The notes: generated by a model from the letters alone, not told the origin. 64,000 bases of DNA from Oopsacas minuta (GCA_024704765.1 JAKMXF010000277.1:475706-539705); one strand, 5' to 3'. Positions 11,882 to 55,576 are shown, numbered from the stretch's first letter. Made by a program: numbers and translations.

Positions 11882-12390
11882 CTACTTCTTAGAGTAAATC
11901 TTTGAGGTCTTACTATCTAATTTAACAATTTCATTTGGTATCACATTTGGCTCCAGTTTTAGTAGATTGTACAAAGTAGCTGTGGTATTCACAAAGTGAA
12001 GTTTCTGCCAAAACTTTTTACTTATGAACGGTTTAGAAATTTTTAAAGTAGTTCTTATCCAAGATGACGGATTAACTATATATAAAGAAGTAAGGCTCTT
12101 TTTCATACGTTCATTGATAATTTCGTAGAACTGTTTAATCCAAGGATAGGACGGTAATTGATGCTGTTGCACACCTGAATGAATATATATAAGGATATAG
12201 TGATCGAATATGAGACTGTCTAACATGGAAATAACATATAGAAAGATCTCTTTCAAAAGTTCTGGATAAAGTTTTTCGGTTTTGAGAGGTAGATATTTTC
12301 CAAATATAAGTACAACTGGCAATCTAGTTCTGTCTTGGATATATCCCCCATGTTGAAATATTCTAGTATAGTTTTCAATTAGTTCCATAT
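11882..12390 (-). CDS. PRUNE2: PRUNE2-like gene, terminal exon: BCH (BNIP-2/Cdc42GAP homology, CRAL-TRIO-like) domain
   Basis: DMELIENYTRIFQHGGY, IFLYVISMLD, PSYPWIKQFYEIINERMKKSLTSLYIVNPSSWIR and KPFISKKFWQKLHFV match the BNIP2/ATCAY/PRUNE2 BCH pattern. Acceptor tttctcctatttag|AT is phase 1, completing GAT (Asp) with exon 3. Stop at 11882-11884. Confidence 0.9.
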
Positions 12391-12484
12391 CTAAATAGGA
12401 GAAAATATGAACCACAATAAATGAGCATGTGCAAAGGATGCAAATAGCGTTGCAATCATTATTTCTAATTGTATATATATTCAT

Positions 12485-14287
12485 ACAAGCAAGCTATGCT
12501 TACTTGCGCTAACTGGCTCGCGAACACTTCGTGTCCACAATACACCAATCGGTGTCAATATAAATAGTTCCGCTATATACAAATTTATCTAATAGGCTAA
12601 GGTATCGACATCAGGGGCAGGCTTAGTTTAGTGGTTGCCCAGGTCTGGGTCGAAATGGGTTAGTGTATATTATTACAACATCCGTTGTCCCGACACAAAG
12701 TAATATTCCTAGGCCTTGCTCGCTCCTGGTCAGCACATATTGTATTCGTAGAATTTTCATCGCTCCGTTAGGAACTTCGGATAGAAAATTCAGAAATAAT
12801 TAATGCAAGATTTAATATGCATGTCCAGAATACAACGAATATTTTTTCCAGTATAGTTGACTATATTTCATTAATAGAAGCGGGTAGTGGTGGAGATTTT
12901 AGCGTGAAAAATTCCAAAGTACGTATTTATGAATCGAGGTATTGAATTACAAACATTCAGCGATCCATTGTCAGTTCGAAAACGAATATTCATATCGTAT
13001 TCACTAGCGTGCTTCGCTTGCTAGGTCGCCACGCGACAGGCGGTAGTATACTTACCAATTCCTCCCCCGGATTTAGCTTATGTACACATTGGGTATCTCT
13101 TAGTGCTTTTGGTTGGAACGCGATGGGATATACTCAGCACTAAGTGGATGTGGTCATGATATAAATTCGCTTTGCTTACTCGCGCTGAGCGGCTTGCGAG
13201 CACTTTTCGGATTCAGTGTAAACTGTTACCCCATTGTAAAATTAAGAGCAAGTCTCTACGTATGTTTGAAGCTTTCCATTATTCGTGTACTGTATACGCA
13301 TAAAAACAACAAATAAATTTGGAGCGCATTCACTAGTCAGAATCATTTTACGACTGTTGTTACAAGTCAGAATCGATTTTCAGACTGTTCTCACAAGTTA
13401 AAAACAAAACATCCATCGATCCGCCATTTTGCAAACTTTTCTAATAATTAGTCCAACCAAAGTCCATTCAAACACAAATTCTCACGAAGTCCACATCCCC
13501 GCGCCTAGGTAGCTTAATAACGAGTAAAATGAAAACTCCCAGATCCATAAGGTAGTGAACTAAATCCTTAATCCCATCCCAATGGTACGGGTTTATAATT
13601 AATACAACAAAAAGTTTTTTCCGGGCCTCGTTTTGCCACGCGACATGTCGGAAACGTAGATTCTGACTTGTGACAACAGTCTGAAAATCGATTCTGACTT
13701 GTAACAACAGTCGGAAAATGATTCTGACTTGTGACAACTAAGGATATTCTGACTAATGATAACTTCGAAATTCTGACTAGCACAACTTCCCCATAAAGTT
13801 ACATGTGAACTTGAAAATATGAAATTCTGATTCAGCGTACTTTATTACCCCATTGTAGCTGTTAAGAGTAAGCCTGTACGTATATTTTAAGATTTCAAAT
13901 AGTTGTTTACTTTATGTTCACAAAACAACAATATATGTACATATGAAAACTTGAAAATGCGAAATTCGGATTCAGCGTGCTTAATTACTCTATATTCCTG
14001 TTGAGAGCAATTCTCTAAGTATATTTCGAGATTTCAACTATTTGTTTACTTTAATAAAAACAATAAATATACATATGACTACTTCAAAAGTGTGAAAATC
14101 AGATTCAGCATAATCGATATGCTTAGTCAAATTTTGTTTAATTCTGTTTACTTTCTTGATAAACTTGATAAATGCGTAGTTATGCAACATCTCAGAATTG
14201 AGAAATTCGACTTCAATATAGGATTCCATAAATCCTTTGCTTGACAACGAACAAACAAACAGACAATTGCAATTAAATAATATAAAT
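12485..14287 (+). mobile_element. HINE/DINE-like element in intron 3, interrupted by a foldback-type MITE
   Basis: 5' hairpin CAAGCAAGC-TAT-GCTTACTTG; GATTCAGC units at ~13209, 13829, 13968 and 14102; 3' CGAACAAACAAACAGACAATTG..TAATATAAAT homologous to 51845-51890. Confidence 0.65.
13321..13791. mobile_element. foldback/MULE-like MITE with subterminal AGTCAGAAT repeats (copy 1)
   Basis: Inverted arrays of ACAAGTCAGAATC/GATTCTGACTTGT. 8-bp TSD ATAAATTT/ATAAAGTT. Close homolog of 62838-63365. Confidence 0.8.
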
Positions 14288-14659
14288 TCCTGGATCTTTG
14301 CTATTTTCTAAAACAAGTTTTATTGATGAGTGTTATCATTTCATTCACGTCACTACAAGTACTTATAGCAATAGCATTGTTAGGTCTAGTTCAATGTTAG
14401 TTTTGTGGTTAGTTGTGACGCAACCTGGTTATAATTTAAATTACCTAATGTTTGGCAAAAATTGTGTGTTAAAGTGAAGAGATTTGGAGCATTGTCGTTA
14501 GTTGGGTATTGTAAGTTTGTAACAAAGTAAGGAATTTAATACTCATGGTATTACCAACTTACAGAAACTATACTCAAAACCTTGTAGGTATTGAAAGTTA
14601 GTTAGGGAACCCATTCCCCTTCCCCAGGTTCACAGTCTTAAGTGTAAATTAGAGTCTGA

Positions 14660-15480
14660 ACAAGTTGTGGATACATTGTTAGAGGTTAGTTCTGAAGTAG
14701 AAATTCTAAGTTGGGAATCTAGAGAATTTTATCTCGAAATCACTGAAAGGGATAGATTGTGTATTATTGATTCAAACCATAGAATGTTATTTTTCAAAAG
14801 TTTGAACAATGCATTATTAAGTTCCATAATGAATCAATGTGTGTTTGGAAGTTTGACTATTATCGGTTGAAAGGGTGATATCTCTAAAATAAACAGTCCT
14901 TTCTTTTGATGTGAGTGTAAATTCCCCAGTTGTAGAACATACGTATTAGATATTAGGAAGATAGTTTTCCAAATATTCATTGGATACAAGATTTATTCAG
15001 AGGGACCAATTTCATCTCAGTAAAATAGACAATTGTTAGATGATAATAATTCTAACAAAACTGGAGGATGTTTTATGGCAAATTGACATATTTAAAATCC
15101 GCTGAATATTTAAGGGAAGTTAAATCTGAAATGAATTTTTGATAGCAGGTGTCCAAATTTACACACGTAAGATGTAGTAGCTATTCAATAGTACTTCCGC
15201 CATCGACTCCTGCTTCCCCTATTCCAGGTTATGTTCAGTACGTTGTACAAGATTCCTATGTGAAAGTTATGTTAGAGTAACTCTAACATAGCTTGCAGGG
15301 TAGACGTACTCTCACCTCTTCGTGGTTACCCGGATCAATTAGATAATGTTATTAAGCGGAGTTGACTGTACATAATTTTGGATTGCTAAGTTTGTCATGA
15401 ATGTTTTAGAAGTTGTAAGGAATATATCATAAAATATACAGTAAAACCATGCCTTCTAAGTTACCGATTTCAAAAAGGGA
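14660..15480 (+). repeat. unclassified old dispersed repeat (decayed coding-like sequence)
   Basis: Shares blocks (GGATAG.TTGTG.ATTA.TGA.TC.AACCATAGAATG; GTTAAATCTGAAATGAA; CCTATTCCAGGTTATGTTCAGTA) with 50150-50870. Related blocks link 37150-37600 with 50850-51320. Confidence 0.6.
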
Positions 15481-17792
15481 GGAAAACGATTGAGTTTCAG
15501 CATTTTGTATAGTTTATGAACGAATAACAAATCAAGTAGTAAAAATTGACAAGTAGGTACTGTGAAAATTGATGTGGGAGTCGAATTGTGGAACATATGT
15601 ACATGTACACTTAGCGTGAAGCATCATTAATAACAAAATACAATTTTATTTAGTGAATATATATTTTGCCTGGCCAAAAATTTGGAATCAAAAGCCGATA
15701 CATGTGGTTAATTACTAAGTTGATTCGGCATTTTGGACCATGGATATCTATAACATATAGTTTGCTGTGGTTGCTTGATAGAAAATGTCCAATAAAGTAA
15801 TAGTAAAATTGGCTCTGTGTATATAACATTCATTAAATTGGAAGACAACACCTAGAGGCAAACAAAACTACTCATTCCTGAAAGTATGATTTCTGAAAGA
15901 ACTTTTTATATATGCTACATTCCCAGTCCTTAAACCATTTTATCAGTGTGTTTAATCCTTGACAGTTGTATGTAATGACAAAGGCGAATAGTGAATTTGA
16001 GAAAATTGTTGGTATGAATGGAATTTGAACACATTCCTGTGTTTCTAAGGAAATGTGTTTCTGTTTGTTGAGGCTATAACTAAAAAACTATGAGTCTTAT
16101 GACTCTAAACTTAAACCAGTAGTTCCGCCATAGTCAGCTTCCAATTCACTAATAAGATAGTTCATTTACTTTTTGCTTACACTTTTTGAAATATTTTGAA
16201 TACTCTATAGATGGCAACCATTTCCAAATATGAGAGATTTCAAAATATCTCAAAAAGTATCAACAAAAAGCAAATAAACTATATTAGTGAATAGGAAGTT
16301 GACTATTACATACTGGTATAAAATTAAGAGCCATAGCACTCATAGTTTTAGAGTTATAGCCTCAACAAAAGAAACACATTTACTTAGCAATAGAGAAATC
16401 TGTTCACGTTCCATTAATACCAACTATTGTTTTCAAATTAACTATTCGCCTTTGTCATTACATACAACTGTCAAGGACTGAAAACACTGACAAAATGGTT
16501 TATACACAGCTTGAAGAGCAACAATTTTCTCTCTAAATTTAGCTTTCGTGAGACCGCATGATGGGATATTATATTTTAGGTTATTAAAATGCATGCTTTG
16601 ATACCATATTCATATATGTCAGGAATACATACACAAGTACATGCATGTGCACAAATCTTTATTATAGTACATCACAATACATATTCAAACTTCAAAGTAT
16701 AGATATTATAAACAAAAAATAAAAATATATTCACGTACTCAAGGCGTTCGAATAAACAGGAGGTTGGAAAAGTTAAATATGATAGCTATCTACATTAGGT
16801 CATATACAAATGTATAATAAGAAGAGGAAAGTAGCCGAACAACGAATAAAGACGAGAGGCCAGATTATAAATCTCATAAATGTTAAATTAACTCTGCAGA
16901 GTTTGCGAATTAAACATATATTGGATAAAAATTTAAGGAATCACTCAAGACAACCTAAAAATTTCAAATGACTATCATTCATCCTCGCTTAGGCGAATTC
17001 AAATCATAACATCATTTCATTCATACTTCTTAAATAATCAGTACATTGTCTTTATAATCGATTTCTAATAACTATATAAATTTCATGTCCATGGCATAAA
17101 TTGAGAAATTTATCTTACAATAAGCTTTCATTAAACATGGATATTTCTTGAGTTGAAAGTGAACGAAGAATGTAAAACAATGCTAGCATAAACTAGATAA
17201 AAAAGTAGTATATGAATAGATGTACTATATACGTATGTTACCGTCCAAATTGAGTATCCGCCAAATTGAGTACTTGGCACCGCCAAATTAAGTAAGGTTA
17301 TTCGTATGCAAAATTTAAGATTAAATGTTATGGTTACTAAAAAAGCAATATTTTATAATTTTAAAGATATGTTTTGTGGTCTGCTAAAATAAATGAATGA
17401 TGTATCTAGATTCATACCACGACTATTATCATTCAATTGACTTGAAAAAAGTATTTGCATGGTTTAATACAATTAATATCTAAATATACACACAAATACT
17501 ATAAAAATCATAACATAGTAAGAAATAATGTAGTAAATGTACTTCTAGAAACTCTATTAGTTTTCAGTGAATTGTCCAGGATAGTTGACCAGTTGATAAT
17601 AAGGTTAGGCGACGAGTTGATTGAGGTGGTTATGAAAAAACCCTGTTTTAACATTACTATATGTTCTCGTATACGGTAGAGTGTCTGTGACCCTTCGAGT
17701 TGCATTTAACCCGCTTCCGTTTGCACTGGCAAGTCTTAGTCCGGCAGCTGTCTTACATTGGCATGAGACGCACGATGTAGCCCCTGGCTCTA

Positions 17793-20700
17793 CAGTGTTC
17801 AATCCAGGATTTACTTTTTGGGGGAAGTTGTCATTAAGGGCAACGCTATAGATCTCTGGCTATTCTTTTGTTTATTTAGCCCAATTAAGATACTACTTAA
17901 TTAAAAACAACGTCACTTACAATATGAATATTTGAAAATCTGTGTTAATTAACAATTCGTAAGAGTTAAGCTTGAACCTCACAATACTATTCTACTGTTC
18001 TTTTGCACTTTATAATAATCAACTAATTCCTTCAACTTATTATTCGTTAGGTGATCAGGGCCTTCAATGCATATGTGCATCCTATATTCAAGCGTGTCCT
18101 CGCCAATCCAGCTTCGGAGTCTTGTTTTAATAGTTTTATACTGCTAAATGTACTGTCAACAGTGGCTGTTGTTACTAGTAAAACTTCTACTATTGCAGCT
18201 AAATTTGATAAGTTTGGAACTGCAATCGAAATGTCCCCGCTGCTGATCAATTTCGTTAGTACATCTTGCAAAGTGCTATTGTTGAATTGCCTCTAAATTA
18301 TCCGCCGAAACAATTTCCGTTCTGCTTCAGTTTCCTCTCCATCAATGTCTGGTTGTGACACCATCATCATCACCAAAGTACATCTGAAAGCATATAGATA
18401 CAAAGTACAGTTTTCTATTTTGACAAGAGAGTCGCAATTCCATGTGCTTGTGCATCACAAGTTTCATCATAATGCTCTTCAAATGTGCGTACCAGGCTTG
18501 GACCGGGTCATGATTTCCTGACCCGGTAAGCTCTGACCCGGTACAAAAGGTTGAAACCTCTGACCCGGTCACCCGGTTTTTCAAAACATTAATTTTCTAT
18601 ATTCATGCGATTTGATAACGATTAGATTTTACTAAGTTTTAATATCCAGGGATTTGGCAATTAAAATCCAGGGAAATTTGTAGAAGGGGTTGATAAGTCT
18701 GAACAAGGCATAGTGTTTTAAAACTCGCCTAGGGTCCTAATAGTTAAAGTTGGGATATATGGCAGCTGGGGCCCTAGTGTTTTCTGTTAGCACCATATTT
18801 TTGTTCCAGAAGTCCTGAAAATATGTTCTGATTTTGATATATGAAATTTACTATATTTAAGTAACGCTAAGAACAAATGATAATTATGATTAATGGAGAT
18901 AAGGCTTAGTAATTTAATTGGAGATATACTAAGTGAAGTCTGTCATATTATCTTCTTTTTCAATGCATCATTAAGAAGAACTAACCCCTCCACTGTATCT
19001 GGATTCAATTTTTCCCGATCTTTCCTCGTAACGCGATCGGCAGAACTAAAGTGGCGTTCCGATTCAGCCGAACTAGCCTGAATTACTAAAAATGACTGTG
19101 ACAGGAAACAGGTAATTGGGAATCTGCAACTGTGTTTCCCCCACCACTTTATAGGATCAAAGATATCTTCATCATATTGGATGGAAATGATCTTTTCATA
19201 GCCTGTTAATTCTGATCTCAAATTTTCTTCATTCCAATTCGTATAATTATTAGTTGAAACTGTAGTACTACAGTTCCTAAAGCATAAAAGTGGATCTAAT
19301 CTGTTACTTTTAGGAGCTGATGGCAGAAGAGGTTCATCTACCTGATTTTCCTGAATTTGGAATTGTGGGGGAGGAATTAATTTCTCTTTAAATGCAAGTA
19401 TAATACCTTCTCTTGCAGTTTTAAGGAAAATGATGCGATCTTGTTTATTCTTCACGAATAGAATTTAGAGATGTCACACCTTTTGTACAAGTTCTTCTGT
19501 CATTATTCGTTTCAGAATACGTGTTAATGGATCATCCTCTGTTTCTATTTCCCAAGCATTTTGAAGAGCATAATATGAAGGTGCCACATTCTGAATACTA
19601 GCTATAGATCCAAATTCGAGGATATCGAATATACGATTAAGTTTTTCAAAAACTTCGTGACGATAGCCAAAAGATTCAAGTCTATTCCTGCAACAATGTA
19701 AGCCTTATTCTTCTCTGTTAATATGTCTGATAACTTTCCATATGACTGCAAAATCGAGTTAAACATTGAGTAAAGACTTCTCCATGGCCTTGTCTTACCA
19801 CCTCTTTTCAGTGATATAGGTAGTTCCGATTGAATTCCAGATGATTTTTTTGCAAATGTAACTGCCTTATTAACGTCATCATGAAGCTGGTCGAGTTCCT
19901 CATTTTCCATCATAGCTCGTTCCCATCCAGTTTTAATCGCGGTATTAATTCTGTGACAGGCACAATCTATCCTAATCTTTTGTGCAGTAGCAGCCACCAT
20001 ATTTGCTCCCTTGTCTGTTGTAACAGGAGTATTAGCAGGATCACAATATACTTCTGTTAAAATTTGATCTAGTTCAAACCCAATATTTTCAGAGGTTTTA
20101 ATTTGGGAAAAACTTTGCAAGCATACATAGCGCATTTGAGGGTCCATAATTCTTTACCAATATCACTCTCATCCGTACCCTGTGAAATCCAGAAAAAGGA
20201 AACATCTAGGTAACTTCGATTCATAACATTATCTGTCCAAAGATCTGTTGTGAAAGCAACAGTATCCCTCTGTATTGGATCTTGGAGTCTAGAACAAATA
20301 TCTTGTTTGATAGTAATGATCTGTTCAACTGTTGATTTTGATATAGCCTTTCGTCCAGGAAGTATATTAGAAGCACTCACATTACCATATTTTGCACCAA
20401 TTCTGATCATTTCTTGAGAGAAAAGGATGAATTGTGGATTTCCAATGGTATTAAATGACAAAAATGCCCCCGCAACGAAATTTCTACTAGAGATAAGAAT
20501 TTTTGAGCATCCTGTTTATTTATAATATCCTTAGAACTTCTATTAAGAAGAGACGTGATTCTAACCTGTAAGGATGATGATACATCTGGACTACAATGTC
20601 GTGTGTGATCATTCAAATTCTTTGTTCCATAATCAATAATCTTACCACTATCCATTTTCATTTTATAAATAATGCATTTGAGACAATGGTTACAGCATGC

Positions 20701-21465
20701 TACTCCAAAAACAATGTTCCGTTATCGTTCAAAACTTCTGAAAAATATTTCCAACAAGTACTTATGTTCAAACGTGTGGAAGATTTTACTTTTAAGGTAT
20801 AAATTTCATTTTCAACTTTCTTACTAATATCAGCACAATCCATCTCTAAACATACAAAAGTATACTACATATCTATATACGTACATAAAAGTATATATGT
20901 ATATAAGTATACAGTAGTAATGATACCAAACAAGTTAGTAAAATACTAATGATTCATGAAAATGAAATGTCTAACTAATATTAACTGAATTATTATGATT
21001 TACAAACCGTTATAATTTAATTATCCATAAAGATATAAACCGGGTCAAGTCAAAATCAGTGAACCGGTTCAAACCCGGTTGACCCGATGACCCGGTTTAT
21101 TCGTGACCCGGTCCAAGCCTGGTGCATACCATGCTGGGATACTCCGCGCACAGCACACACGGCTCTTTCACGTGCGAGCCATAGAGCATCACCAGGTTTT
21201 ACCATTATAATCTCAGCAGATTGGAGTTCCGCTTGGATCAGTGAAATTTTTTCTGTTTTCTTGGGAGAATAATGGAAAGCTTTCCAGATTGTTAACATTG
21301 TTACCTAAACTCTCATTATTTGTACATGTTCTGTACAAGCATTGACAGCAGAAAGTTGAAATTTATGGGACTGTAGTGGATATAAATTGCACTTCTTGCA
21401 AGTGATCTCAGACGCCTTTGAACGCTACTTATATGGCCAGACATTGTATTAGTAACAACAAACCC
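17793..21465 (-). mobile_element. truncated hAT element (ZNF862/ZMYM1-like transposase) nested in the Ginger-like element
   Basis: One terminus CAGTGTTCAATCCAGG at 17793. Dimerisation-domain remnant PNLSNLAAIVEVLLVTTATVDSTFSS (18047-18271); FHYSPKK..KPGDALWLARERAV (21130-21298); NTMSGHISSVQRRLR..AIYIH (~21380-21460). The other end is deleted. Confidence 0.75.
18493..21121 (-). mobile_element. Ac/hobo-like hAT transposon with frameshifted transposase
   Basis: TIR CAGGCTTGGACCGGGTCA with subterminal GACCCGG repeats. 8-bp TSD GTGCGTAC/GTGCATAC. Motifs FTTDLWTD, TTDKGANM, CACHRIN, TRPW, DPIKWW..ASSAESERHFS. Confidence 0.92.
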
Positions 21466-22849
21466 AAGGACAGCTCTCTCTCAGGGACATCGTCAGGTGG
21501 ATAAGCTTGTCAGTGCCACAGGGTGTTAAGTCAGTGTAGGTGAATGCTATGCTGATTGTTCCATGTGCAGTCCCAATCTGGAAAATCCCTCCATCCAGTA
21601 AACATCCGTAACAGTACCAATGAGACTGTTGGGACCAATGCTAGCCCTGTCAGGGTAAGGAATGGCATCCTCACATTATCCCCTTTCAATAGTCTTCCTA
21701 CGTTTCATACTAGACTGTATCATGTCAGCTCCTTGCTTTCTGAGTGCTCTCCAGCTTCTTTGACGGAGCCTCTCAGCATTTCGCGCTATCCAACAATACT
21801 CATCGCGCGCGCAGAAGTACTGTACTGGAGTCTTACCGTACGCATCTAGTCGGTCCAGGTAGTCAGCCAGATGAAATGGGGCCAGAGGTAATGTTAATAT
21901 AAGGTGTAACTTGTGTTCCGATCTGCAGGGTACAGTAAGGTTGTAGGAATCGTCATCAAGATCGTCGGCAAACACATATCCTGCCTTTGTTGGTTTGGCA
22001 AATGCCGCAGAGGCGTACGAAGAGGACAATTAATGCACGAAGCACTTGACAGTTGTGGCTCATGAAATACTCGTAGACCCTGTTACATCCGCCATGACTG
22101 AGCTCGTGATGTGAGGCCACTAACGTATCCCACAGGTCTTAGCCATACGCGTAATTTGCTCCATGAAGTCCCCGGATATCATCCCTTCACCTACAGGACC
22201 TTTACTCACTCAAACTCCTCCACAGGATAGCGCAATTTGGTCCTGCCCCAATTGGGATCGTTGGTGTTGCAACCATCCTTTCTATAGCTCTCTATAATCC
22301 CATCTCTCTCCTCTCTCCTCACCAAATGTAAATTGATTGAGTTACTAATGCTCTGCTTCGAAAATTTCTTTAGTATTTGACAAAGGAAAGTATATTGATT
22401 TGGCCCAGATGAAACAAACGCAAACAATAATAACATATTTATAGTAACTAGTTAGAAATCGCGCAGTAACTGTCGCGTGATACACAAGTGTTAATATAGG
22501 CCTAATACCACAGTAGCATCCAGGTAACTTTGGTATGTATGTTGAATAGTAATTACACAAATATAATTCCATTTTAGTTAACCCATAATATCGTTAGTAT
22601 AAGATTATATAAGAAAAACATTTCTCAATTTGGACGGTGACATATACGTTGCATAGAATTCAGGTAGCTAATGAAAAATCCAGAAGTGGTTGAATAAAAA
22701 CTTAGAGTCAATATTCCAAATTAAATAAAAAGGGGGGTTAGAATAAACGCAGGGTGGGGGGTGTAAGGAAATTCTATAAATAAATAAGCGGGGCCCCGTT
22801 AATTAGAATCCCTAGCTCATAAAGTATTTCAAAGTAAATATATTTGCAA

Positions 22850-24420
22850 CTTAGCTAGGACTCTTTCTAAACCAAAACGCCCATACCTCCCAGATGACCA
22901 TTCCAGTTTAGGTTGTAATTTCATCAAATCACTTCCAGTTTCAATTAAGGTATTCACTCAGAATATTAAATAATTATCGAGTTATGCTACCAAATTACAC
23001 CCCTCCAAATTCCGCATTATTTCATCATATTTTCTCGATCTTGGATCTTCAACAATTTTCGTGGTTCATATTTTGTACAGGATGTAACCAAATTGATGCC
23101 CTATTCCAATATACGCAAGGCGACTAAAACTTCAATTCGCTTCACATGGTGGCCATGGCCGCCCCAGCTACTGCAGTCCCGACTTCTATACCCGAATAAT
23201 ACATATTTATATGAAACTCTTAGCATTGTTACATAATAGTGAATATGCACATCTATGGTAATTTTTAACTGACGCAAATATCTTCAGAGATACATTAACA
23301 AAATGTACTATCATGGTATGGGAAGTCGGGTATATACTACAAAATAGCTATCCTTAGCGATAATTGGATATAAATAAAAATTTGTCTTCCCAGGTCATAC
23401 GGTAACTCAAGAATAGGGAACTTTTATTACAAATTTTTGACATTTTCTACAAAATCTATAGATCAAATCGTATATTATCTGTGAAATGAAAGAAGCAATA
23501 TTTTAGGCTCTACAAGGGATCAAAGAATGACATATTTTAGTAAATAAATGCTTACTAGGCACATATTTTGACAAATTCGGAAAATCCTAGAATTATGCAA
23601 TACATTTATTCCGGCAAAAATGCGCCGTTTCTACAATATAGCAATCACTTGTCCTTTGCTATATCGGGTAACGTATCCCTAGTCCAAGATCCACAGTTAC
23701 TGTTTAGCTTCATGTATAGTAAGCTAGGTTTAACCTAGTGGTCGCATGATCGCAACCGGCCAATATTCTCGGCATGAGGCAGCTCCGAATTGAATATAGC
23801 CACTTACATTATGACAGAAAAGAATGTATAAAAGTCAAAATGGCCCAAAATGGTGTTAGACAAACACAATGAAGGAGTTGTCATAAAGAAACACAAAAAA
23901 TTTTACGACTTCGTTTTAACCTAACCCGCACCTAAATTGAGATTTTAGCAAGTCTTTGCAATAATAAAATGAACATTTCATTGGACGTCATAAATGACAT
24001 ATTCACATTATTCAGTTAACACTATGGAAAATTCAATTTGTTGGTGTAAATTGATTTTGGAGGCACACATGGTTTGTAAATGAAGAATAATGCTGATTTT
24101 GAGGAGAAATTTGAATAGATTGGGTAGCAATACCAAGTATGCTGTTTTTTTAGCGTCCCATAACCCCCGAATATAAAATTATGAACCACACAAAATGTTG
24201 AAGAGCGAAGATCGGGAAATAATATGGAATAGTGTGATAGTATAAGGGGTGTAATTTGTAAACGTGACGATATATTCATTTAATATTCTGTGTGAATCCC
24301 TTAATCCATTAAGGAAGTGATTTGATGAAATTACAGCCTAAAAAACTGGAATTATCACCTGGGGAATGTTTTCTAAATTTTGGCATGAATGACAAAGAGA
24401 ATAATCCAGAAAATTTCAAC
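22850..24420. mobile_element. non-coding element bounded by diverged inverted repeats
   Basis: 22885-23010 (ccagatgaccattccag..aaattacacccct) is the reverse complement of 24240-24365 (aggggtgtaattt..ctggaattatcacctggg). Outer boundaries are approximate. Confidence 0.55.
23270..23730 (+). repeat. dispersed repeat family (other copies at ~34540-34860, ~57040-57140, ~62740-62830/63375-63410)
   Basis: Shared blocks AAAATGTA.TA.(A)..GTATGGG and GCAAAA.ATGC.CC.TT.CT.CA.TA.AG.AA.CA..T. Confidence 0.55.
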
Positions 24421-30708: not shown

Positions 30709-30717
30709 ATATATAAG

Positions 30718-44432: not shown

Positions 44433-47400
44433 CAGTGTTTCTCAAAGTGGGCCGTAGAGCCCCCTAGGGGGGGCGCTGAAGGGTTGTAGGGGGGGCGCTG
44501 TGGGTTATAGAAAGCGAAACAGAGATACGACCTCACGCCAAAAAAGTGGCATCATATGCCTCATTGTTCATTACCAATAGGTGCTAACAAATACTTCAAT
44601 GATCAAAGCCATTTACAGTGGTATTACTCTTGGTGATTATTAACAACAGCTAATCCTTAAAAATGAATGAAGAATTCTTTTGTTACGATGTCTATGGCTT
44701 TCCCAATCGAAATATAATTATCACTGTTCTCCAAGCAAATGTAAACTTCGTAATAGTTAGCAATCTGTTTAATTTGAATGTAAATACATACGTAGAAATC
44801 TAAACCGAAAGGAATTGATAAACTCGATCGAAGAAATGAAGAGTAAAAAGAATAGTAGACAGTATAGTGATTAGGCCGGATCGAGAAAAGTATAAATCGT
44901 CGGTTCAACTTCTACCTAAGGGAAAAGTTGCCTTTACCATTTTCTAGGAAAATCCGAGACTTAAATTTGAAAAATATTTCGATTTGACCCTTGCGGTTTT
45001 ATATTTTTGCTGTGTCACTTTCCCAAACTTGACTTTAAATTGTCCGAATTTTCAAATTCCTTTGACTTAGACCCTTTATATATATTATTTGGTAATACTA
45101 AGTCGCATATTTGCTATTGAATGGTGTATTAATCGAATTTATAGGTCCAAGGATACTCAAGTTATCAAGATTTTTTTGCATATTCTATCATACCCCAATA
45201 TTATTACCCACCCCCCATTTTTTCGATTAGTTGAAAATTCTATATTCTTAGTAAAATTTGTTATATAATCACCAAACTTAATATATTCCTTTATCTAGAT
45301 CCAAATTCATCGATAGGTTACCATAAAGAAATTTTACCAACATTCCTTATCTCTTGTTCTTAACTTAGTTACCATTTATCTAGCATGGAATTTATGGTCA
45401 ATTATAGTATCTATATCAATACTCGATCAAATCATTTATATTATTGAGTGATTATATTCCTAAAATTTATTTACTTTTGAAATGGCAGAAAACACACGTA
45501 GTAAAGTATTTCATCCTATTTTTGGCTATCCAGGACCCATTCCAGAAAATCAACTTCCAACAAAACTAGATATATAATCATTATAGAATGCTTAGAAATG
45601 AAGATTCTAAATCAATGAGAGATGATATAGCGAAAGAACTAACTGAAGTATTAGTGCGTATCTATAATTTGGCATCCATACCCACTATATCAGAGCTCAA
45701 AATAAAACAGTACATCAATTCTGATATTATCGAGAGAGCTAAATACTACGGAAAAGTATCCAAAACAAGCAACAACCTGACCGTATACAGCCTATTATTT
45801 CCGAATTCAATGTCTTGTTCGATGTCTCAAGTTGCAAATGCCTAATTCAGGAAGGTAAATGTTTTTGCTCTCTCGATAAAAAGATACCACACCGTGAGTG
45901 GCCATTTCTCTTTGATCAGCGAAACGCTCGAAAATTATTTATATCCAGCTTGGATTGCATGACAACCTCTAAAAATTTTGTTAAACAAAAAAGAAAAGAG
46001 GCACAATATGAAAGAGAAGAAAGGGAAATGAAGAGATTACATGCAGTTCAACCTTCGCAAGAATTTATAGAATGTGACTTTGAAGAGTTTGAATCTTTTG
46101 ACTCGAGTACATCTAATACTCACAAGTATACACGTAATCATAATCAATTACGAAATTTCGCCATAATGTGTGATAGATATCAAATTAGCGATCGGGCAGG
46201 CGCAGCTATAGCTAACGCAGTACTGCAGGATTACGGTATTATCACACCGGAAGAAGATAGTCAAATTATTGATAGAAACAAACTCCGTAGATCTAGATTC
46301 TCTGTGAGAAAGGAATTGGCTAATGAGGCTCACGAAACTATCAATGATATATCTGCAATATATTTTGATGGCCGTAAAGATCAAACTAGAGTACTGGTAG
46401 AAAGAGAAGATGGACATTTGCATCAGGATACTGCAAATGAAGAACATTATACTGTCTTATCTGAACCGGGGAATCAGTATGTTGCCCATATAACACCAAG
46501 TTCTGGTAAAGCCAAAGATATAGCAAAGGAATTGACTGATCTTTGCAGGGAGCGTAATTCAAATTTAATGGCGGTTGGAGCTGATGAAGCTCGTGTTAAC
46601 ACTGGAATCTACAATGGGTGTATTAGATTACTTGAACTAGAGTTCACAAAACCACTCCACTGGTTTATTTGCCAATTACATGGTAATGAACTTCCATTGA
46701 GGCATCTCTTTCAAATAATAGATGGAAAACCAGTGGACCCAATTCTTTTAAAGGAGTAATTGGTAAAGAACTTAATTGTGATTTTACTTGCAAACCAATT
46801 GCAGCGTATCATCCTTTATGCGGTAAAACTCAACTTATTGATTGCGATAGTCTCAAGAATTTAAATAAAGATCAGAAATATCTATATAATATCTGCCATG
46901 CAGTTCAGACTGGTATTTGCTCATCTGAACTGGCATCGATGCAACCTGGTCCTATACATCATGCTAGATGGACAACACTGACCAACAGATTACTTAGGTC
47001 GTACATTTCTACGATACATCCCACACCTGAATTATCCCGACTTGTCAATTTTATTGTCAATTATTATGCACCAGTTTGGTTTAGAATCAAGAGTAACCCG
47101 ATTTGCACAGATGGACCTAAAAATATGTTTTTTGCGATATCTATGCTACGAGATCTACCGGAGTCTGACCAAGAAGTAATTTGCGATGTGATACAGAGAA
47201 ACTCATATTTTTGTCATCCAGAAAATCTCCTGTTATCGATGCTTGCAGATAATGATGAACAAATTAGACAAAAGGCAGTGAAGACTATTTTAGATATCTG
47301 AATTAACAGTTCATCATTTAGACCGATTGAAATTCGCCCATTTAATCTTCCTTCAATAAGGTTCACTGCCGAAACATATGTAGATATGATTGATTGGGAA

Positions 47401-49927
47401 ACCTCTTTTATCACAGAACCGCCTTTTACAAGATATCTCTCAAAAGAAGTACTAATTAATTGTGTACGTGCTCCACTAGAAATTCCAGCATATCCATGCC
47501 ATACACAAGCTGTTGAAAGAACTATTCAATTAGTCACTAAAAGTTCGTGTTCAGTAACAGGAGAAGATGCGAAACATGGAATAATTCTTTCAACCCTAAC
47601 ATCAAGAAAAAATGCCCGCATTTGGGTCAAAGAAAGATTATGCATGTTAAATATACTTGATATAACATAATTGAATCATATACCACGATAGATAAAAAAG
47701 CTAATAATTTTCAAATAATCGGAAAAAAATGAGGAGTGAGTAATAATATTAGGGTATGATAGAATATACAAAAACAATCTTGATAACTTAAGTATTTTTG
47801 GACATAGAAATTCGATTAATACACCATTCAATAGCAAATATGCGACTTAGTATTACCAAATAATATATATAAAGGGTCTAAGTCAAAGGAATTTGAAAAT
47901 TCGGACAATATAAAATCAATTTTGCGAAAGTGACACAGCAAAATATAAAACCGCAAGGGTCAAATCGAAATATTTTTCAAATTTAAGTCTCGGATTTTCC
48001 TAGAAAATGGTAAAGGCAACTTTTCCCTTAGGTAGAAGTTGAACCGACGATTTATACTTTTCTCGATCCGGCCTAATGATTATATCAAATACGGATTTGT
48101 TAAATCTCCTTCCAATGAACAATTCTCAATGTGTTTGCAGTGCGAACAAGTTTTTTCTAATGAGGGAATGAAGCCATAAAGAATGATTGATCATTTGAAA
48201 TCGTGCCACAGTGATAAGGTAGAGAAAGACGTGCAATTCTTCATGAAATTGATAGACAGCCGCAAAGCAAGGGCGGAATCTTTGGAAAAATAGATAGACA
48301 AAACATTGATGGTTTGGTTGCCTCCTATAACATTTCGTATTTCGTTACTAATTGTAACATCTGATAAACCACATTACAATTGGTGAAAAACTCATTTACC
48401 TGCAATCCAGGAAGCAGTTATGCATTCAGATGGGCGAAGTGTGATTAAGTCCATTCCGTTAAGTAATGATACTGTGGCTAGGATAATTAATTTGATGGCT
48501 TGTGATGTTGAGAAAACACTATACAGTATACTTAAAACAACGGAATTTTCTCTTCAAATTGACGATTCCACATCGCTAGGTAACGAAGCACTGCTCCTTG
48601 CATATGTCCGATATATTCTCGAAGGAATAATGGTCGAAGATATGTTGGTTGCTAGAACACTAGTAACTGATAGAAAAGGTGAATCTATCCACAAAGTCGT
48701 GGAAAATTTCTTTCAGGAAAAGGATATTCCAATGAATAATATCACTGCTTGTACAACAGATGGGGCGCCAGCTATGGTTGGTAGGCATCGTGGTTTCATT
48801 TCGTACTTGAAAAAGCTGTGCCTGAGATTTTCGCTATTCACTGCGTCGTCCATCGAGAACATTTGGTAGCAAAACATCTAAGTGGTCGCTTGCACAACTC
48901 ATTGCATATCGTCATTACCGTTATTAATAAAATCAAAGCTTCGGCACTCAAGGAAAGAATATTTCGCCAAATATGTCACGACAACGAAACAGAATTTGAA
49001 CTCCTGCTTTTGCACACAAAAGTGAGGTGGCTCTCAAAAGGAAAGTGTCTCAGTCGGTTCTACAGTCTTTTCGACACCATTTTAGAATTTTTAGTGGAAG
49101 AGAACCCGCAGTTAATGCAGCTTGTCAGTGCAGCGAAATCAAATGTAGCTTACTTGACTGACATTTTTGATAAGTTCAACGCAATGAACTTGCAACTACA
49201 AGGCAATTTAGTCACTCTGGTCAAGTGCAAAACTGTTGTCAGCTCCTTCATAGGGAAACTAACGTTATTTAAACAAAATATCGGTCGACGGGAATTTTAC
49301 CAGTTTCCTCACCTAGCAGGACTCCAAATTTCAGATGACGATTTGCTAGCATATTGTGAACATCTTGAAGTACTGAAAGCGGATATGATCAAGCGATTCA
49401 CTGACTTGTTGGAACTTGAACCGACTCATCGGCTATTTGACCCTTTCTGTGTGGATGCCCCAACAGTTCCACTCTATTTGTAGGAATGGTTGATGGACTT
49501 GCAAAGAGATTGCGAGGAAAAAGTTCATTTTACAATGATGGGTGATGAACGATTTTGGATTGCAATCGCAGGACAAAATAAATTTCCCAATTTGTGGATA
49601 GTAGCAAAACTGCTAGTTCTGGCGTTTCCGACATTATATCTCTTTGAGAGAGGTTTCAGTGCAGTCGTTGAATTACTAACGAAGCAAAGAAACAGACTAG
49701 ATATTTCTGAATGCGGAGATTTGAGATTACTGCTAACTGATATGAAACCAGATGTAAGGATTATCGACGAACATCACGCTCAAGTATACCCTCTCATTAA
49801 TTGCTAAATAGTACATATTATCATTAAACAAATACGAGTGTAGTAAAAATGTTTAGACTTTCTAGAGGGGGGTATTAAGGGAATATTGTTGACAACGGGC
49901 GCTGTCCGAAAAGTTTGAGAAACACTG
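44433..49927 (+). mobile_element. Buster-group hAT (ZBED5/SCAND3-like) interrupted by a long-TIR element
   Basis: TIR CAGTGTTTCTCAAA and 8-bp TSD ACTTAGAT/GCTTAGAT with central TA. The N-terminus RQYSD|YIKYGF is split by the 44871-48076 insertion. Motifs FSLQIDDST, TTDGAPAM, HCVVHREHL, HTKVRWLS, FPTLYLFERGFS. Confidence 0.93.
44871..48076 (+). mobile_element. long-TIR DDE transposon, probably hATm-like, with frameshifted transposase (45482-47670)
   Basis: ~370-bp TIRs starting TTAGGCCGGATCGAG. Motifs YFDGRKD, EEHY, CQLHGNELPLRHL, HHARW, RNSYFCHPEN and PCHTQAVER. No 8-bp TSD (only TGA or TGATT is duplicated). The superfamily call is from memory. Confidence 0.8.
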
Positions 49928-51329
49928 GCTTAGATTTTCAAATGTTTGGTAAATATGTATGTTTAAGTGGAGATATTTTGAGCTCTTCCATTAGTCGGGT
50001 ATTGGAACAAAGAAAGGAATTGGATATTGATGGTTTTACCAGCTTACAAAAGTGAATATCTTTTTCATGTTGAATATTTAGATAAGTAGCCGATTCCCCT
50101 TCTCCTGTTTCACAATCCTAAGTGTAATGTAGAAAGTGAACGAGTTGTGGATAATAGTTAGATCTCAGCTCTGGAGTTAATTTTGAGATTGAAAGTTGTG
50201 AATTGGAAGACTGTAATCTCATAATTACAGAATGGGATAGTTTGTGCATTACTGACTCGAACCATAGAATGTAAATGGTCAGTAATTGGACGAATGTATT
50301 TTCTTCTAAGTTTCATGATGTAAATAGTATATGTGTCTTGAATTTTGACTATTACCGGTTGAGAAGTCAGATAGCCGTAAGATAAACAGTCCTTTCTTTC
50401 GAACTAGAGAAGAATGTAAATTCCATAATTGAAGACCATATGTATTATATATTGACGACGAGAGTTAATAAAATAAACGTGTAGTGTTCAAGTTGTATTC
50501 TGAAGGATCTCTTTCAACTCATCCTACAGATGGCACACGTGCTTATTGTAGTAATTTATCCAGTGGCGAGCGCAGAAAAATGGGAAGATTGTTAGATAAT
50601 TATTCTGTGAGCAAAACATTTAATAAGCAATTCAATGATTCTGACAAAACAGGGAGATTGTGTTATGGCGATTTAACTTATGTAATCGGCGGATTGGTAA
50701 GGAAAGTTAAATCTGAAATGAAATCGGCTAGTAGGTTTTCAAATTCTTACATGGAAAATGTAGCAGCTTCTCAGCAGTACCTCGGTCATCTACTCCCAGA
50801 TTCACCTATTCCAGGTTATGTTCAGTATGTTTCTGGAAGGTCTATGTGTTATACAAAAAAGAAGTTAGCAGCCAATTCAAATTAAAAAACGTATTCACTG
50901 CAATCGTTTATTTGACCAGCTTACCGTCTAGCTAGAGAAAAGAACTTGATATTATTCGAAAGTATAGCGTTAGTGGATAACGAAAATGTCATCAGAATTG
51001 TAAAATATGTGTGATGACTTAGCATTGAGGTTTTGAATACTTTTCCATTAGTGTCAGCTATAATGTCGTATTTGACCTGTTTCTCATTATTATTTTGATA
51101 CAAATTTTCTTCTACATACTATTGAGGGCTGGTGGATTATGTGTTTAAAATTTCTTCTAAAAATATTCATTAATTTTGAAATATTTTATTTTTGAAAAAC
51201 TCAACGAAGAAGTTAGACTAGGGTCACTTCAGTCACCAATATGACTCACTTATACTCATCAGATTGAAACGAAATTAGTATCATTGGAAAGAAGAGAGTT
51301 GAGCGTTTTAAGCAATATGTTTTGATATT

Positions 51330-51890
51330 AAAAAGACGAGCCATTGGCTCGTAGCTTCACGAAGAACTTGACGCATTGCGCCTCGAGGTATTCAACGGAC
51401 AAACAAACAGCCAAACAACAATTGATATATACAATTATTGATGTTGTTTACAATATTCAGACTTGGCATACTCGATTATATCAGTATAGTCGTTGAAAGT
51501 ATGATTCTACTTCAATTTTGAATTTTATTTACTTTATGTACCTAGAGCAAACAAATATTCACAATATATTGTTTATAATACCATATTCGGACTCAGTGTA
51601 CTCGATTACCTCCGATAGTCGTTGAAAGTATGATTTTACCTCAATTTTGAAATTTGTTTACTTTGTATTCATAAAAACAGCTATAAATTTACATACGACC
51701 AATCCAAAAGTGTGAAAATCGGATTCAGCATGTTCGATATATTTAGTCGAGTTCTATTTAATTCTATTCACTTCCTTGATAAACACGATAAATACATAGT
51801 TGTGTAATAATTTCAAAATTGCATACCGTAAATCCTTTCCTTGACAACGGACAAACAGACAGACAACAATTGAGATTTAATAGTATAGAT
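51330..51890 (+). mobile_element. uninterrupted HINE/DINE-like composite element
   Basis: 5' hairpin GACGAGCC-ATT-GGCTCGT, two GACA/AACA-rich 3'-like termini, ends AGTATAGAT at a T-rich site. The paralogous empty site is at ~37595-37625. Confidence 0.75.
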
Positions 51891-53004
51891 TTACTCTTAG
51901 TTACTTTTTGGTGAAATTTTGATTGTCACGCCTCCTTTGAATTCACCCGCCTAAAGTTAGAATTCGATTCTGAAATTATATATGCACACTTTAGTGATAT
52001 GGATTTTCATGGAAATTCAATTTTATTAAAAAATATTAACAACTCACGGAGCTAGAGGAATTCAAATTTTAAGCCGGGAGTGAGAGTGATAGGGGAACGA
52101 TCTTATTTTACATAAAGTAGGGCCAGTCCAAACTCATGTTTCTTACCCTAAATCCGACTGAATTTCAATTATCTTAATGTTAATCGATAGTTGAGATATA
52201 GACGTTTCTAACAATATCGATATTTTTCGTGAGACACTACAAATTAGCACCAGCAATGGCCTGCAAAAAGCGATAAATTCTCAGGTTTTATGTGTATTAT
52301 GAATTCTAACTATGAGATCATTTCTTGAAGATATTTCTCATCATAACCCCTTCAAAATTTATAGATACCTTCTTTCGTATCTTATAATTCAATTTCCTTA
52401 AAAAAAACTGGGGTCGCTAGTACTTTTTTTAACATTTGGTGGTAATATATTTTTAAGGGTTCTTTTCATTATGAGTCAATGTTAAAGTTAATTCTTGTGC
52501 ATACAAGTAAATACGTACGTACCTATACATTTGCGTCAATCTTATGGTATTTTCTTCGGAACTAACTTATCTAATTTTATTCCAACACCTAAATTTGCTT
52601 ATTGTATGGCGATAAATATAATGATGCAAGACTGTAACTGACTGTTCAATATCAGTTTCATCATTTTGGTAATCTATAGTTACACTTGAATTCTAGTTAC
52701 GAGACGATATGTCTCTTATTGTGGGCATTATCTACCTCTGATTTAACCGTGTATAAAATTAGAAGGAGTCGATTTAATTAATTGTATTGATAAATACAAT
52801 TCTGAAAGAAAATTAATTTATTTCTTCAACACATCTGAAGCTCAGTTGTAGGTAGATGGTTCAAAATTCTATGGGTTATCTAAAATTAGAAATATATCTG
52901 GATTTTTGCAATTCACGGATGCATGTTTTATTGATCAGTTTTATCACTTCGTTAATGTCATCATCACAGGTGCTTATAGTAATAGCTTTGTTGAGTGTAG
53001 CCAT

Positions 53005-53810
53005 GGCCTACTATATACACGGCTAGTTAAGCAAAGAATTGCCAAAATAATTTCCAGGCCAGTGATTATACTGTTTGATCATGAAGAATTGTAGTATCAT
53101 TACAAATTCAACTGTAAATAGGATTCCACATATGGCGGAGACATCTAGAATACTTTTGAACCTGCTTTCCAAGTTATTTTAACCGCAATGACGCAATCTA
53201 AGTTCATGCCCTTATATGGGTATTTTGTTGATTTTTGTCAATTTTTTCAGAAATTCTCAAACTAAACTAACCCGTTTTATCAAAATACCTTCTACTTGTT
53301 AAATGTTAGTTTAAGTAACCAAAAGATGATCTTCATTTTCATAAACACTCGTTAAATAATCATTTTAGTGATATTCGCCATAAAATAACATTAAAAAGTA
53401 AACCCTAGAAAATCGAATAAATTCCATCAAAAATGTATGCCAACACAAAATAAGTTATAATTGTTAACCACTTTATAAGTATATTGAATAGTCTTTCTAT
53501 TGTGTTTTTGTGCTAAGTTAATACGAATCATGATTCATTTCATGGGATTTGTGGGTATTTCGATAATATTGGTATTTATTAGTAAAATAGTTACTATCAT
53601 TGAAGGTGAACGTTGATTACATCATTGTGGTTAAAATAACTTGGAAAGCAGGTTCAAAAGTATTCTAGATTTCTCTGCCATATGTGGAAACCTATATACA
53701 GTTGAATTTGTAATGATACTGCAATTCTTCATGATCAAACAGGGTATAATCAATGGCCTGGATATTATTTTGGCAATTCTTTGCTTAGCTAGCCGTGTAT
53801 ATAGTAGGCC
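53005..53810. mobile_element. MITE with ~195-bp TIRs, ISL2EU/Harbinger-like ends
   Basis: GGCCTACTATATACACGGCTAG...CTAGCCGTGTATATAGTAGGCC flanked by AT on both sides. GG..CC termini with an AT TSD fit ISL2EU. Confidence 0.8.
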
Positions 53811-54553
53811 ATGGATCACTTGATATTAATCTGGAATCGGGGATGCAGTAGTAATCGTTTATCAGAGCTTGAAAAATGGTGCATTTTTAACAACATTTTT
53901 CCCTTCTGACCAAACAGATCAAGTCATTTCGAACTGATTATAGTTGGATAATATGGCATTTGTGAATAATTGACCATCAATTATATATTTATTCTAGCCA
54001 AAAATGTACCGATTTTGTTTTATCGATAAAATTAAAATTGCATGTCATATTTAATAGACTTGAAGTATTCAATGGTCCTTGAAATTCTAGACAGTGGATA
54101 GGCTTTAGTTTCTTAGCCTGTGTGCACTACATATTTGTAGAACAACAAATTACTAACACTATAAGCTAAAAATTTAGGGTATGCGGGAAAATGGATATGC
54201 CATAATTTTGGTAGTATTTTATATATTGTAATTGGCAAATGTATTGTGTTTTAGGTCATAAATTTGTACTATTGAATTATTTTTGGCAAATATATCGATT
54301 TACTCTTGCAATGATTCAGAGCTTGTATTATTTGGGGGCACATACTGCATGTTCTCGGCAAGAAATAAATAACCAGTCGGTTTTGGTAGCTAATTATTTT
54401 GATAATAAATTGATGAATCGTTTGCAACCATTAGTATTAGTAATAACATTTAGAAAATCAATTTAACAACTTAGGCAACTGTGTATTTAATGCTAATCCA
54501 AGAAGTGGCAGTATAAATTTCACAATGATTAATGCCAACGTAATGAAATATAC

Positions 54554-55576
54554 CTGAATAATAACATGATCAGGAGAATCTAAAACAGAATGATTAAATT
54601 CAAACTCTTCTAAACCAGTACATTCGCAAAATATTTCCATAAATAAAGACCATATTTGTACAATATCCATATCAAGCTGTAATTTAGCTACGAAGAAAAT
54701 TTGCAGAGGAATCTGTGAACAAATATTTGAAGTAGCAGCTCCCAAAAATGCATCGAAAGATTCAGCCTCTAATATTTTGAGAATACTGGCGACAGATTGT
54801 TGAACATTAGATACTATATCAGAAGAAGAATAAAGTATTCTTCCATAAAACAGGTTTATACCGTTGAAATTAAACAGTTCAATTTTAGAAGAAATTAGTT
54901 TTTCAGGCATATCGTTAGTATAGCAATAATCTGAAAATTTGTATGCTTGATTCAATATTGCGTTGAAATCAAATTCGGAAATAATTGAAGAAACTTTTGA
55001 AAGTATATCAGTTTCCAACCCAAAAATATGTTGATTGTTATTTATAATATGCGAAAGAGACAGAGTTATCATCTTGCAAACAAGGGATTCCTGAAGTGTA
55101 GAATCAGAAAGAATAATAGTAGATAGATGAAGTAAAAATTTGGGATTCTGTAGGGGAAATTCGAGAAGGGGATCAAATTTTTCTTGTACAATACTTTCAC
55201 CAAAGCGAATATTAAATAACTTAAGAGTGTCTGGAGAAATATCGATTTTGCCAATATAATTTCTGGGAAAAGAACTTAAAAAGATAAACTCGCGGAAATC
55301 GATCATGATCCGTGCCAATACGACTTTAGAAAAATTCTGAAATATTGGATCAGATGTATCAAACGAAAAAATGGGAATGTAAGTATATTTATCAGTGCTA
55401 ACTACTTGTATTTGCTTGAAAAAAACATAACACAAGGTAGAAACTATGTATTCAAAGTCTGATCTGCTAGGCGAAATAACAAAACAAAAATTTTCAGAGT
55501 CTGCAAACGTGAATTCAATCCCTTTATGTAAGATATTCTTCTTCCATAAAGTACAACTAGATATAATAGTTTCCAT
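54554..55576 (-). CDS. PRUNE2: PRUNE2-like gene, coding exon 1 (341 codons): degenerate DHH + DHHA2 'prune' domain
   Basis: Lies in ORF 54458-55639. From METIISSC (compare PRUNE1 MEDYLQGC), VISPSRSDFEYIVSTLCYVFF aligns without gaps to recalled PRUNE2 VIGPKSCDLDSLISTFTYAYF. YIPIFSF..LARIMI...FIF matches the VPVLNI..L.KV.I...LIF block, and GINLFYG..ESFDAFLG matches the DHHA2 GVKVAIS..SYDVLVA block. Phase-0 donor CAG|GTATAT at 54554/54553. An acceptor-like tract (tttttacatatttag) ends at 55597, just upstream of the ATG. Confidence 0.75.

Follow-up and report, generated by a model that had tools for sequence, protein, structure and literature searches.

A window of 64,000 nucleotides (nt), the whole stretch of DNA analysed here, from the sponge Oopsacas minuta (GCA_024704765.1 JAKMXF010000277.1:475706-539705) contains four exons at 11882-55576 on its minus strand, which are one real, expressed protein-coding gene. 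Joined, they encode a protein of 667 amino acids (aa). The whole is read as a probable compact PRUNE2-like gene, in which a probably dead, prune-type DHH module precedes a BCH domain. A hidden four-exon gene had been proposed in a preliminary description of this DNA, and the gene is real, as indicated by RNA in which exon 1 is spliced to exon 2 and by the same structure in a relative. Its span of 43.7 kb is due to DNA transposons, which filled the three introns.

Structure, expression and conservation of the gene

The exons, of 1023, 312, 160 and 509 nt, add up to 2004 nt with zero internal stops. Exon 1 (54554..55576, on the minus strand like all parts of the gene) covers codons 1-341 and encodes the putative diverged prune/PPX1-type DHH-DHHA2-like domain, from which the catalytic histidines are absent. 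Intron 1 (36824..54553; 17,730 nt) is filled by DNA transposons, and its splicing was seen in the RNA contig called record 19. Exon 2 (36512..36823; codons 342-445) opens with the conserved start VFDQVNKSFTLSELN and continues as a Ser/Asn-rich linker. It is separated by intron 2 (27084..36511; 9,428 nt; GT..AG), containing an open reading frame (ORF) of a hAT-like transposase, from exon 3 (26924..27083; codons 446-498 plus 1 nt), in which a basic stretch, DWKRLRRRYKKVCINDEEYVL, leads into the BCH domain. Intron 3 (12391..26923; 14,533 nt; GT..AG) has inside it elements bounded by terminal inverted repeats (TIRs). Exon 4 (11882..12390; codons 499-667 plus the stop codon) encodes the group-I (BNIP-2-type) BCH domain, directly after which the frame stops. 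All three introns are of the GT-AG type, in phases 0, 0 and 1. With a slash marking the splice site, the donors read CAG/GTATAT (exon 1), AAG/GTATTA (exon 2) and TAG/GTATTT (exon 3), of the common form AG/GTAT. This model, including its coding length, phases and intron lengths, is the one given in the preliminary description and was fully reproduced.

An open frame of 341 codons has a probability of ~4e-11 per start at the base composition of the window. Since only ~5e-6 such frames are expected in the whole window, exon 1 is not a chance frame. Taken alone, exons 2 and 3 could be chance ORFs, and their backing comes from RNA and conservation. Of the phase-0 GT sites that precede the next in-frame stop, the exon 2 donor at 36512 is the best, and exon 3 has no alternative acceptor, as a stop codon immediately precedes it. 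An in-frame stop is located 108 nt 5' of the ATG, and Met1 does not vary among the four family members.

Four runs of one sample (X1-X4) contain exon 1, and their depth was compared across 52600-57400. In X1, X2 and X4, the depth is flat over the exon and its flanks, as in DNA. X3 behaves as RNA, because its depth is high on the exon (~412 on 54550-55558) and 0 in the adjacent intron (54210-54531). Record 19, a contig of X3 of 2,651 nt, matches the window from 55558 down to 54550 and then continues with an exact copy of 36790-36819 from the beginning of exon 2. The 4-nt offset at the exon 1/2 joint results from the presence of ATAC on both sides. As the contig continues into exon 2, the junction 54554>36823, for which a check in RNA reads had been suggested, is seen in RNA.

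Record 19 reaches 1,642 nt past exon 1. Exons 2-4 need 981 nt, with a remainder of 665 nt for a 3' untranslated region (UTR), and the length of the contig equals the 1,986 exonic nt downstream of 55558 plus these 665 nt, which is consistent with the model and is not proof of it. The predicted 3' UTR (11217..11881, minus strand; ~665 nt) is given by arithmetic only, the contig end not having been observed. AATAAA/ATTAAA signals are found 476, 565 and 739 nt past the stop codon. The length argument is only approximate, because the predicted end at 11217 does not fall 10-30 nt after a polyadenylation signal. X3 also contains 100% of the sampled words of exon 4 (share 1.00).

Upstream of about 55658, the depth of X3 drops from ~505 to ~74, about sevenfold. 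In the window, a pyrimidine tract and TTTAG are located 20 nt before the ATG, forming a candidate 3' splice acceptor (TTTAG/A; 55596..55598, minus strand), and in all relatives a YAG stands 3 nt before the ATG. This acceptor and the drop in depth would fit a spliced-leader acceptor, at which the mature 5' UTR could begin, but a leader sequence was not observed. The high-depth X3 contig ends at 55558, 18 nt inside the coding sequence. A separate X3 contig of about one-sixth of that depth spans 55569-55873, and 55569 is also a break point in one of the DNA-like runs. The break at 55559-55568 may correspond to a polymorphism or to a branch of the assembly graph, possibly between a leader-spliced and an unspliced form.

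Relatives of exon 1 are few. An exhaustive phmmer search with this exon over 1.8 billion representative proteins returned two, P0001 (343 aa, 33% identity, 6.5e-38) and P0002 (355 aa, 26%, 2.8e-19). Two profile searches added just P0010, and a scan of the JGI metagenomes gave no further relatives of exon 1. All three proteins have the same initial Met and end in ..IQ followed by GT, which identifies them as ORF-level calls of exon 1 in other genomes. Among the 1.8 billion representatives, exon 1 was found only in such calls. The BCH exon has seven homologues (P0003-P0009) with 59-71% identity. These are CRAL_TRIO proteins, and the three exon 1 relatives are without any Pfam match. The prediction that an ORF-level annotation would split the gene is borne out, exons 1 and 4 of the relatives being separate ORF products in public collections. 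There is a lesson for annotation in this, as a gene with introns of 9-18 kb appears in the protein collections searched just as two unlinked ORFs.

The linkage and orientation of exon 1 and the BCH exon are kept in three genomes. On ena:ERZ25072740:ctg126224, the exon 1 homologue P0002 and the BCH-exon homologue P0008 are on the same strand, 23 kb apart, and on ena:ERZ25766962:ctg17082, the corresponding pair P0010 and P0004 is again on one strand, 49 kb apart. The ctg126224 locus was rebuilt as four exons of 1014, 243, 157 and 479 nt, giving 1893 nt and 630 aa. Its introns (3.9, 9.9 and 9.1 kb) are all GT-AG, in phases 0, 0 and 1. The identity to the window is 27, 25, 38 and 60% for exons 1-4, and all six splice sites match those of the window in position and phase. 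Directly after the acceptor, exon 2 starts with AFDLINGSLELTSLK in ctg126224 vs VFDQVNKSFTLSELN in the window, and it ends in ..SDLK/GT vs ..SDK/GT. This exon was not detected in relatives by tblastn, phmmer or tblastx, and that of ctg126224 was found after the addition of a missing 3.2 kb and local alignment. The exon 3 homologue of the relative (phmmer 6.7e-8) keeps both boundaries and the phase, and the junction CINDEEYVL/DMELIENY, named earlier as the entry into BCH, is likewise kept in position and phase in ctg126224. The exon 4 acceptor, YAG/ATATGGAA, is common to six loci. Conservation of the BCH exon begins exactly at this point, the upstream parts of the ORFs being unrelated between species. 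Six splice sites kept at such a divergence leave little room for a division into two genes.

In ERZ26869290, the exon 1 homologue is present as a head-to-head inverted duplicate on a short contig, L001:2517-3548(-) and 6599-7630(+). The BCH-exon homologue is likewise an inverted duplicate, L008/L009:286-783(+) and 1451-1948(-). These duplicates could be palindromic assembly artefacts or real duplications. The BCH product of ERZ26869290 is also found on contigs of two other samples and in one Logan run.

Domains of the encoded protein

Single exons were used as queries in the Pfam, NCBIfam and PDB searches. Exon 4 matches CRAL_TRIO_2 (PF13716) at 9.1e-22, with 78 bits vs a cutoff of 23, as had been anticipated for a C-terminal BCH domain, and CRAL_TRIO at 1.1e-9. 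A further match is to human ARHGAP1, whose BCH domain (PDB 6r3v; 2.9e-18 over 111 residues) is the sole BCH relative with a solved structure that sequence searches returned.

BCH domains have been divided into three groups: the C-terminal BNIP-2 type (I), the macro/GDAP2 type (II) and domains placed N-terminally and followed by RhoGAP (III) (PMC3313917, Gupta et al. 2012). Almost every group-I row in block 1 of the alignment of that study has [IL]xPYxxV[IL][ST]HGG-Y, which is in no group-II or group-III row; group III has ..ARHxIVEV-AGDD and group II ..LYQSG-VD (PMC3313917). By-eye comparison with this block reveals the HGG-Y block as IENYTRIFQHGGYIQD in the window and IGRFTNIYQHGGYIKD in ctg126224. 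Judged by this sequence block, exon 4 thus encodes a group-I BCH domain, the BNIP-2 type. No RhoGAP match was found in the minus-strand ORFs downstream and no Pfam match to a Macro domain in exons 1 or 2, and the features of groups III and II are therefore lacking. Among the Atlas language-model neighbours of exon 4, short CRAL_TRIO_2 clusters, mostly of Nucleocytoviricota (0.94-0.96), come ahead of the chordate 'prune homolog 2' (0.90). This ranking is probably an effect of length or of fragments.

BNIP-2, BNIP-S and caytaxin (BNIP-H) also have a C-terminal BCH domain with the group-I motif ..Y..[IV]..HGG-Y, as in the window. Their N-termini are mostly unstructured BNIP2 regions, whereas in the window a predicted folded, DHH-like module precedes the BCH domain. 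In ARHGAP1/p50RhoGAP (group III, 6r3v), the BCH domain is N-terminal and followed by RhoGAP, whereas the BCH domain of the window ends the protein and the group-III motif is absent.

Residues 1 to ~365 would form a strongly diverged prune/PPX1-type DHH-DHHA2 module, with the metal- and substrate-binding histidines lost. It would be followed by ~130 residues of a poorly conserved Ser/Asn-rich linker, with the basic stretch at its end, and by the C-terminal BCH domain of group I (BNIP-2 type). Taken as residues 342-498, the linker measures ~157 aa in the window, close to the ~150 aa claimed earlier, and ~133 aa in ctg126224; a kilo-residue linker is not present.

The N-terminal module was studied on two AlphaFold models: one of window exon 1, from a 3-sequence alignment and with a predicted local distance difference test (pLDDT) of 52.7 (model 1), and one of the relative P0001, with a pLDDT of 56.4 and beta strands in its C-terminal half (model 2). 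The alignments of the two models overlap. In a Foldseek search of AFDB/Swiss-Prot with model 1, the top five matches are PRUNE1 of four mammals and the S. pombe exopolyphosphatase, with a probability of 0.95-1.0, and in the PDB, yeast PPX1 comes first. VIA re-alignment also places PPX1 at the top (Z 6.8, 213 residues), with family II pyrophosphatases at Z 4.7-5.2. An Atlas shape search with this model returned DHH/DHHA2 families in 6 of 10 rows. With model 2, Foldseek found the same five Swiss-Prot proteins (E 3.9e-4 to 1.4e-3, probability 1.0), the probability dropping to 0.44 at rank 6, and the top three rows of the Atlas shape search are eukaryotic DHH/DHHA2 clusters. Residues 6-343 of model 2 are collinear with PRUNE1 3-340. 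The language-model features of P0010, a search on the sequence only, retrieved sets from no other group than the DHH superfamily, CDC45 among them, with a low score (0.76).

In structure, exon 1 and its relative are matched best by PRUNE1 and by the PPX1 proteins of yeast and fission yeast, with collinearity along the entire length and an identity of 13-14%. PRUNE1 and PPX1 are without a BCH domain, and the sponge protein differs from them in having no DHH tripeptide, no invariant His and no match at the sequence level. In the fold alignment, the end of exon 1, at the junction IIQ/VFDQVNKSFT that the preliminary description took as the end of DHHA2, falls at PRUNE1 residue ~340 of 453, and the start of exon 2 is conserved. 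On this evidence of fold models and language-model neighbours, homology of exon 1 to DHH/prune proteins is considered quite probable.

The four-sequence alignment has 38 invariant columns, with zero His among them. A DHH tripeptide is missing from the model, and at its expected place, the end of the third strand, the four sequences read RFG, SRD, IFT and NFS (the motif being mapped by inspection). Active DHH phosphoesterases (PRUNE1, PPX1 and family II pyrophosphatases) have the DHH motif and metal-binding Asp/His, which are not conserved in the sponge module. Since an invariant His and the DHH tripeptide are both lacking, the module is probably not a phosphoesterase. Its residues suggest that it is probably catalytically dead, a pseudo-phosphoesterase.

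The BCH domain of BNIP-XL/PRUNE2 binds RhoA/RhoC and RhoGEFs and dimerises (summarised in PMC2655648). By analogy with vertebrate BCH domains, that of the sponge protein might bind Rho-family GTPases, or their guanine nucleotide exchange factors (GEFs) or GTPase-activating proteins (GAPs), and dimerise. The protein would then most likely modulate Rho-family signalling, as assumed from BNIP-XL/PRUNE2. The dead DHH module would be a surface for binding or regulation and not an enzyme, and the fast-evolving linker might act as a tether.

Origin of the fusion and identity of the N-terminal module

PRUNE2/BMCC1 has been studied almost solely as a human tumour-suppressor locus. The vertebrate protein has what is probably the same order of parts, namely an N-terminal DHH/DHHA2, a linker, a short basic BNIP2-like stretch and a C-terminal group-I BCH domain (PMC10225987, PMC3313917). 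Its long isoform has 3,088 aa (PMC2655648), compared with 667 aa here, and BNIP-XL is its short isoform. The sponge protein is further distinguished by a DHH part beyond the reach of Pfam, by catalytic histidines that are not conserved and by its non-bilaterian host.

In the published survey of BCH domains, the combination of DHH/DHHA2 and BCH is described only for vertebrate BNIP-H/BNIP-XL, and Nematostella is named as having the deepest group-I BCH (PMC3313917). It is put forward here, tentatively and as a possibility that falls short of being probable, that the prune-BCH fusion dates to the animal stem. It would have been kept with a dead DHH in a compact form in glass sponges and lost or split elsewhere, and the giant linker would have been acquired later in vertebrates. 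An origin by exon shuffling in the sponge lineage, independent of vertebrates and making the gene an analogue of PRUNE2 and not its orthologue, is rather unlikely. It would agree with the published survey, in which DHH/DHHA2 is present only on some vertebrate BNIP-H/BNIP-XL proteins, insects and Nematostella have one plain BNIP-2-type gene, and Trichoplax and nematodes have none (PMC3313917). It would also agree with an older BLAST survey, which reported BMCC1 to be without invertebrate homologues (PMC2655648), and with the 42 kb that separate the exons of the two domains, an arrangement that can result from shuffling. However, both surveys are old and include few non-bilaterian genomes, and the common order (DHH, basic stretch, BCH) and the group-I BCH domain fit common ancestry at least equally well. 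Current databases may hold invertebrate fusions already; a search of the literature for 'prune homolog 2' among invertebrates brought up nothing of use.

If the sponge gene is indeed a compact PRUNE2, it would provide a small, tractable protein to probe the role of the prune module beside BCH. It would also mean that catalysis is dispensable for this role, and that the oldest known group-I BCH gene moves from cnidarians (according to the 2012 statement) to sponges.

Several observations weigh against the reading of the gene as PRUNE2-like. Pfam (E<=1-10) finds no DHH (PF01368) or DHHA2 (PF02833) in window exon 1 or its three relatives, and exon 1 has no match in NCBIfam or, with single-protein and profile queries, among PDB sequences. 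With model 2, PPX1 is found at rank 32 in the Foldseek search of the PDB and at rank 43 (Z 6.3) in the VIA wide search, which is independent of Foldseek, below generic helical bundles. The language-model features of the window exon 1 sequence point to unrelated ADP-ribosylglycohydrolase-like clusters (0.74), and the score of P0010 is itself low. Both models are of low confidence, with a pLDDT <50 in the C-terminal half and template modelling (TM) scores to PRUNE1 of 0.33-0.38. Only four family members exist among >15 billion proteins, and the conservation statistics are thin as a consequence. On the BCH side, the BNIP2 profile (PF12496) is matched only over its last 19 positions, where exon 4 begins (E 0.098, 13.5 bits vs a cutoff of 27), and exon 3 alone has no BNIP2 match in Pfam. 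The BCH signature is R(R/K)h(R/K)(R/K)NL(R/K)xhhhhHPs (PMC3313917). It is fitted by ERMKKSLTSLYIVNPS of the window at 11 of 15 specified positions, the signature His being Asn in the window and His in the relative P0008. Of the three junctions (exon 1>2, 2>3 and 3>4), only the first was directly observed in RNA. The prune identity claimed in the preliminary description has thus found mixed support: the Pfam profiles are missing from exon 1 and its relatives, and the PRUNE1 matches of Foldseek, the Atlas shapes and the language-model neighbours speak for it.

In a rival reading, the gene is single, but residues 1-341 form an alpha/beta domain that is specific to the lineage and has no relation to prune, and the DHH matches arise as artefacts from weak models and a common Rossmann-like arrangement. 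The absence of any profile or sequence match to DHH/DHHA2, the pLDDT of 53-56 and the small number of family members agree with this, as does the fact that the VIA wide search and the PDB Foldseek search with model 2 do not single out DHH, thioredoxin-like and helical matches having a similar Z. Such a domain is nevertheless improbable, as both models give the same five prune/PPX1 proteins at the top of Swiss-Prot with a gap to rank 6 (1.0 vs 0.44), the Atlas shape searches agree on DHH, and the sequence-only search with P0010 yields nothing outside the DHH superfamily. It would moreover be a large coincidence, the only well-known partner of group-I BCH being a DHH fold (PMC3313917).

A split into two functionally unconnected genes, with exon 1 coding for a hypothetical protein of 341 aa and ORF 11882-12484 being a BCH-only gene, would fit the position of exon 4 inside a 200-aa ATG-initiated ORF, the BCH-only genes of insects and plants (PMC3313917) and the separate calls by public ORF callers, but this explanation is largely refuted and very improbable, given the RNA contig that joins exon 1 to exon 2 and extends 1,642 nt past exon 1, the in-frame chain of four exons with the same splice sites in two species, the start of BCH-exon conservation exactly at its acceptor and the linkage and orientation kept in three genomes.

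Contents of the introns and surroundings

The mean intron reported for this genome is 341 bp (PMC10280926), compared with 9-18 kb here; glass sponges are, however, known to have large host introns and nested genes (PMC10282587). The earlier claim that the introns consist of nested transposons is supported in general terms by TIR, foldback, pogo/Tc5 and hAT-like elements. Intron 1 contains a pogo/Tc5-type DNA transposon at 42427..44301 on the plus strand (HTH_Tnp_Tc5 3.4e-14, DDE_1 4.7e-34), with 27-nt inverted ends (pair I12) and a guanine-cytosine content of 46% vs ~35% around it. Its transposase is split over overlapping ORFs in adjacent frames (42535-43191 and 43164-43985), a pattern that points to a frameshift or an intron. 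A second element of 3.2 kb in intron 1 (44863..48084, plus strand) is bounded by TIRs of ~320 nt (pairs I1, I2 and I8; 90-99% complementary), and its inner ORF (45815-46759) has no Pfam match. A nested foldback element (53001-53814; inverted pairs I3 and I6) is located past the exon 1 donor, 740 nt downstream. Its depth of 1,000-7,900 in the DNA-like runs, vs ~30-40 for unique sequence, identifies it as a very high-copy repeat resembling a miniature inverted-repeat transposable element.

The hAT-like transposase ORF of intron 2 is located at 31601-32947 on the plus strand (DUF4371, 2.1e-24), and intron 3 contains the inverted-repeat pairs 25518/26823, 22907/24342, 15931/16502 and 13330/13734. 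In the relatives (L003, L010 and L011), the introns carry hAT, THAP, FLYWCH, MULE, TNP-like and pogo ORFs. Large, transposon-laden introns are thus shared by this gene across species and are not an accident of one genome. Downstream of the gene, an ORF with a TNP-like RNase H N-terminal domain (7895-8539, minus strand; 1.4e-14) and a reverse-transcriptase fragment (RVT_1; 2890-3354, plus strand; 2.7e-8) are present.

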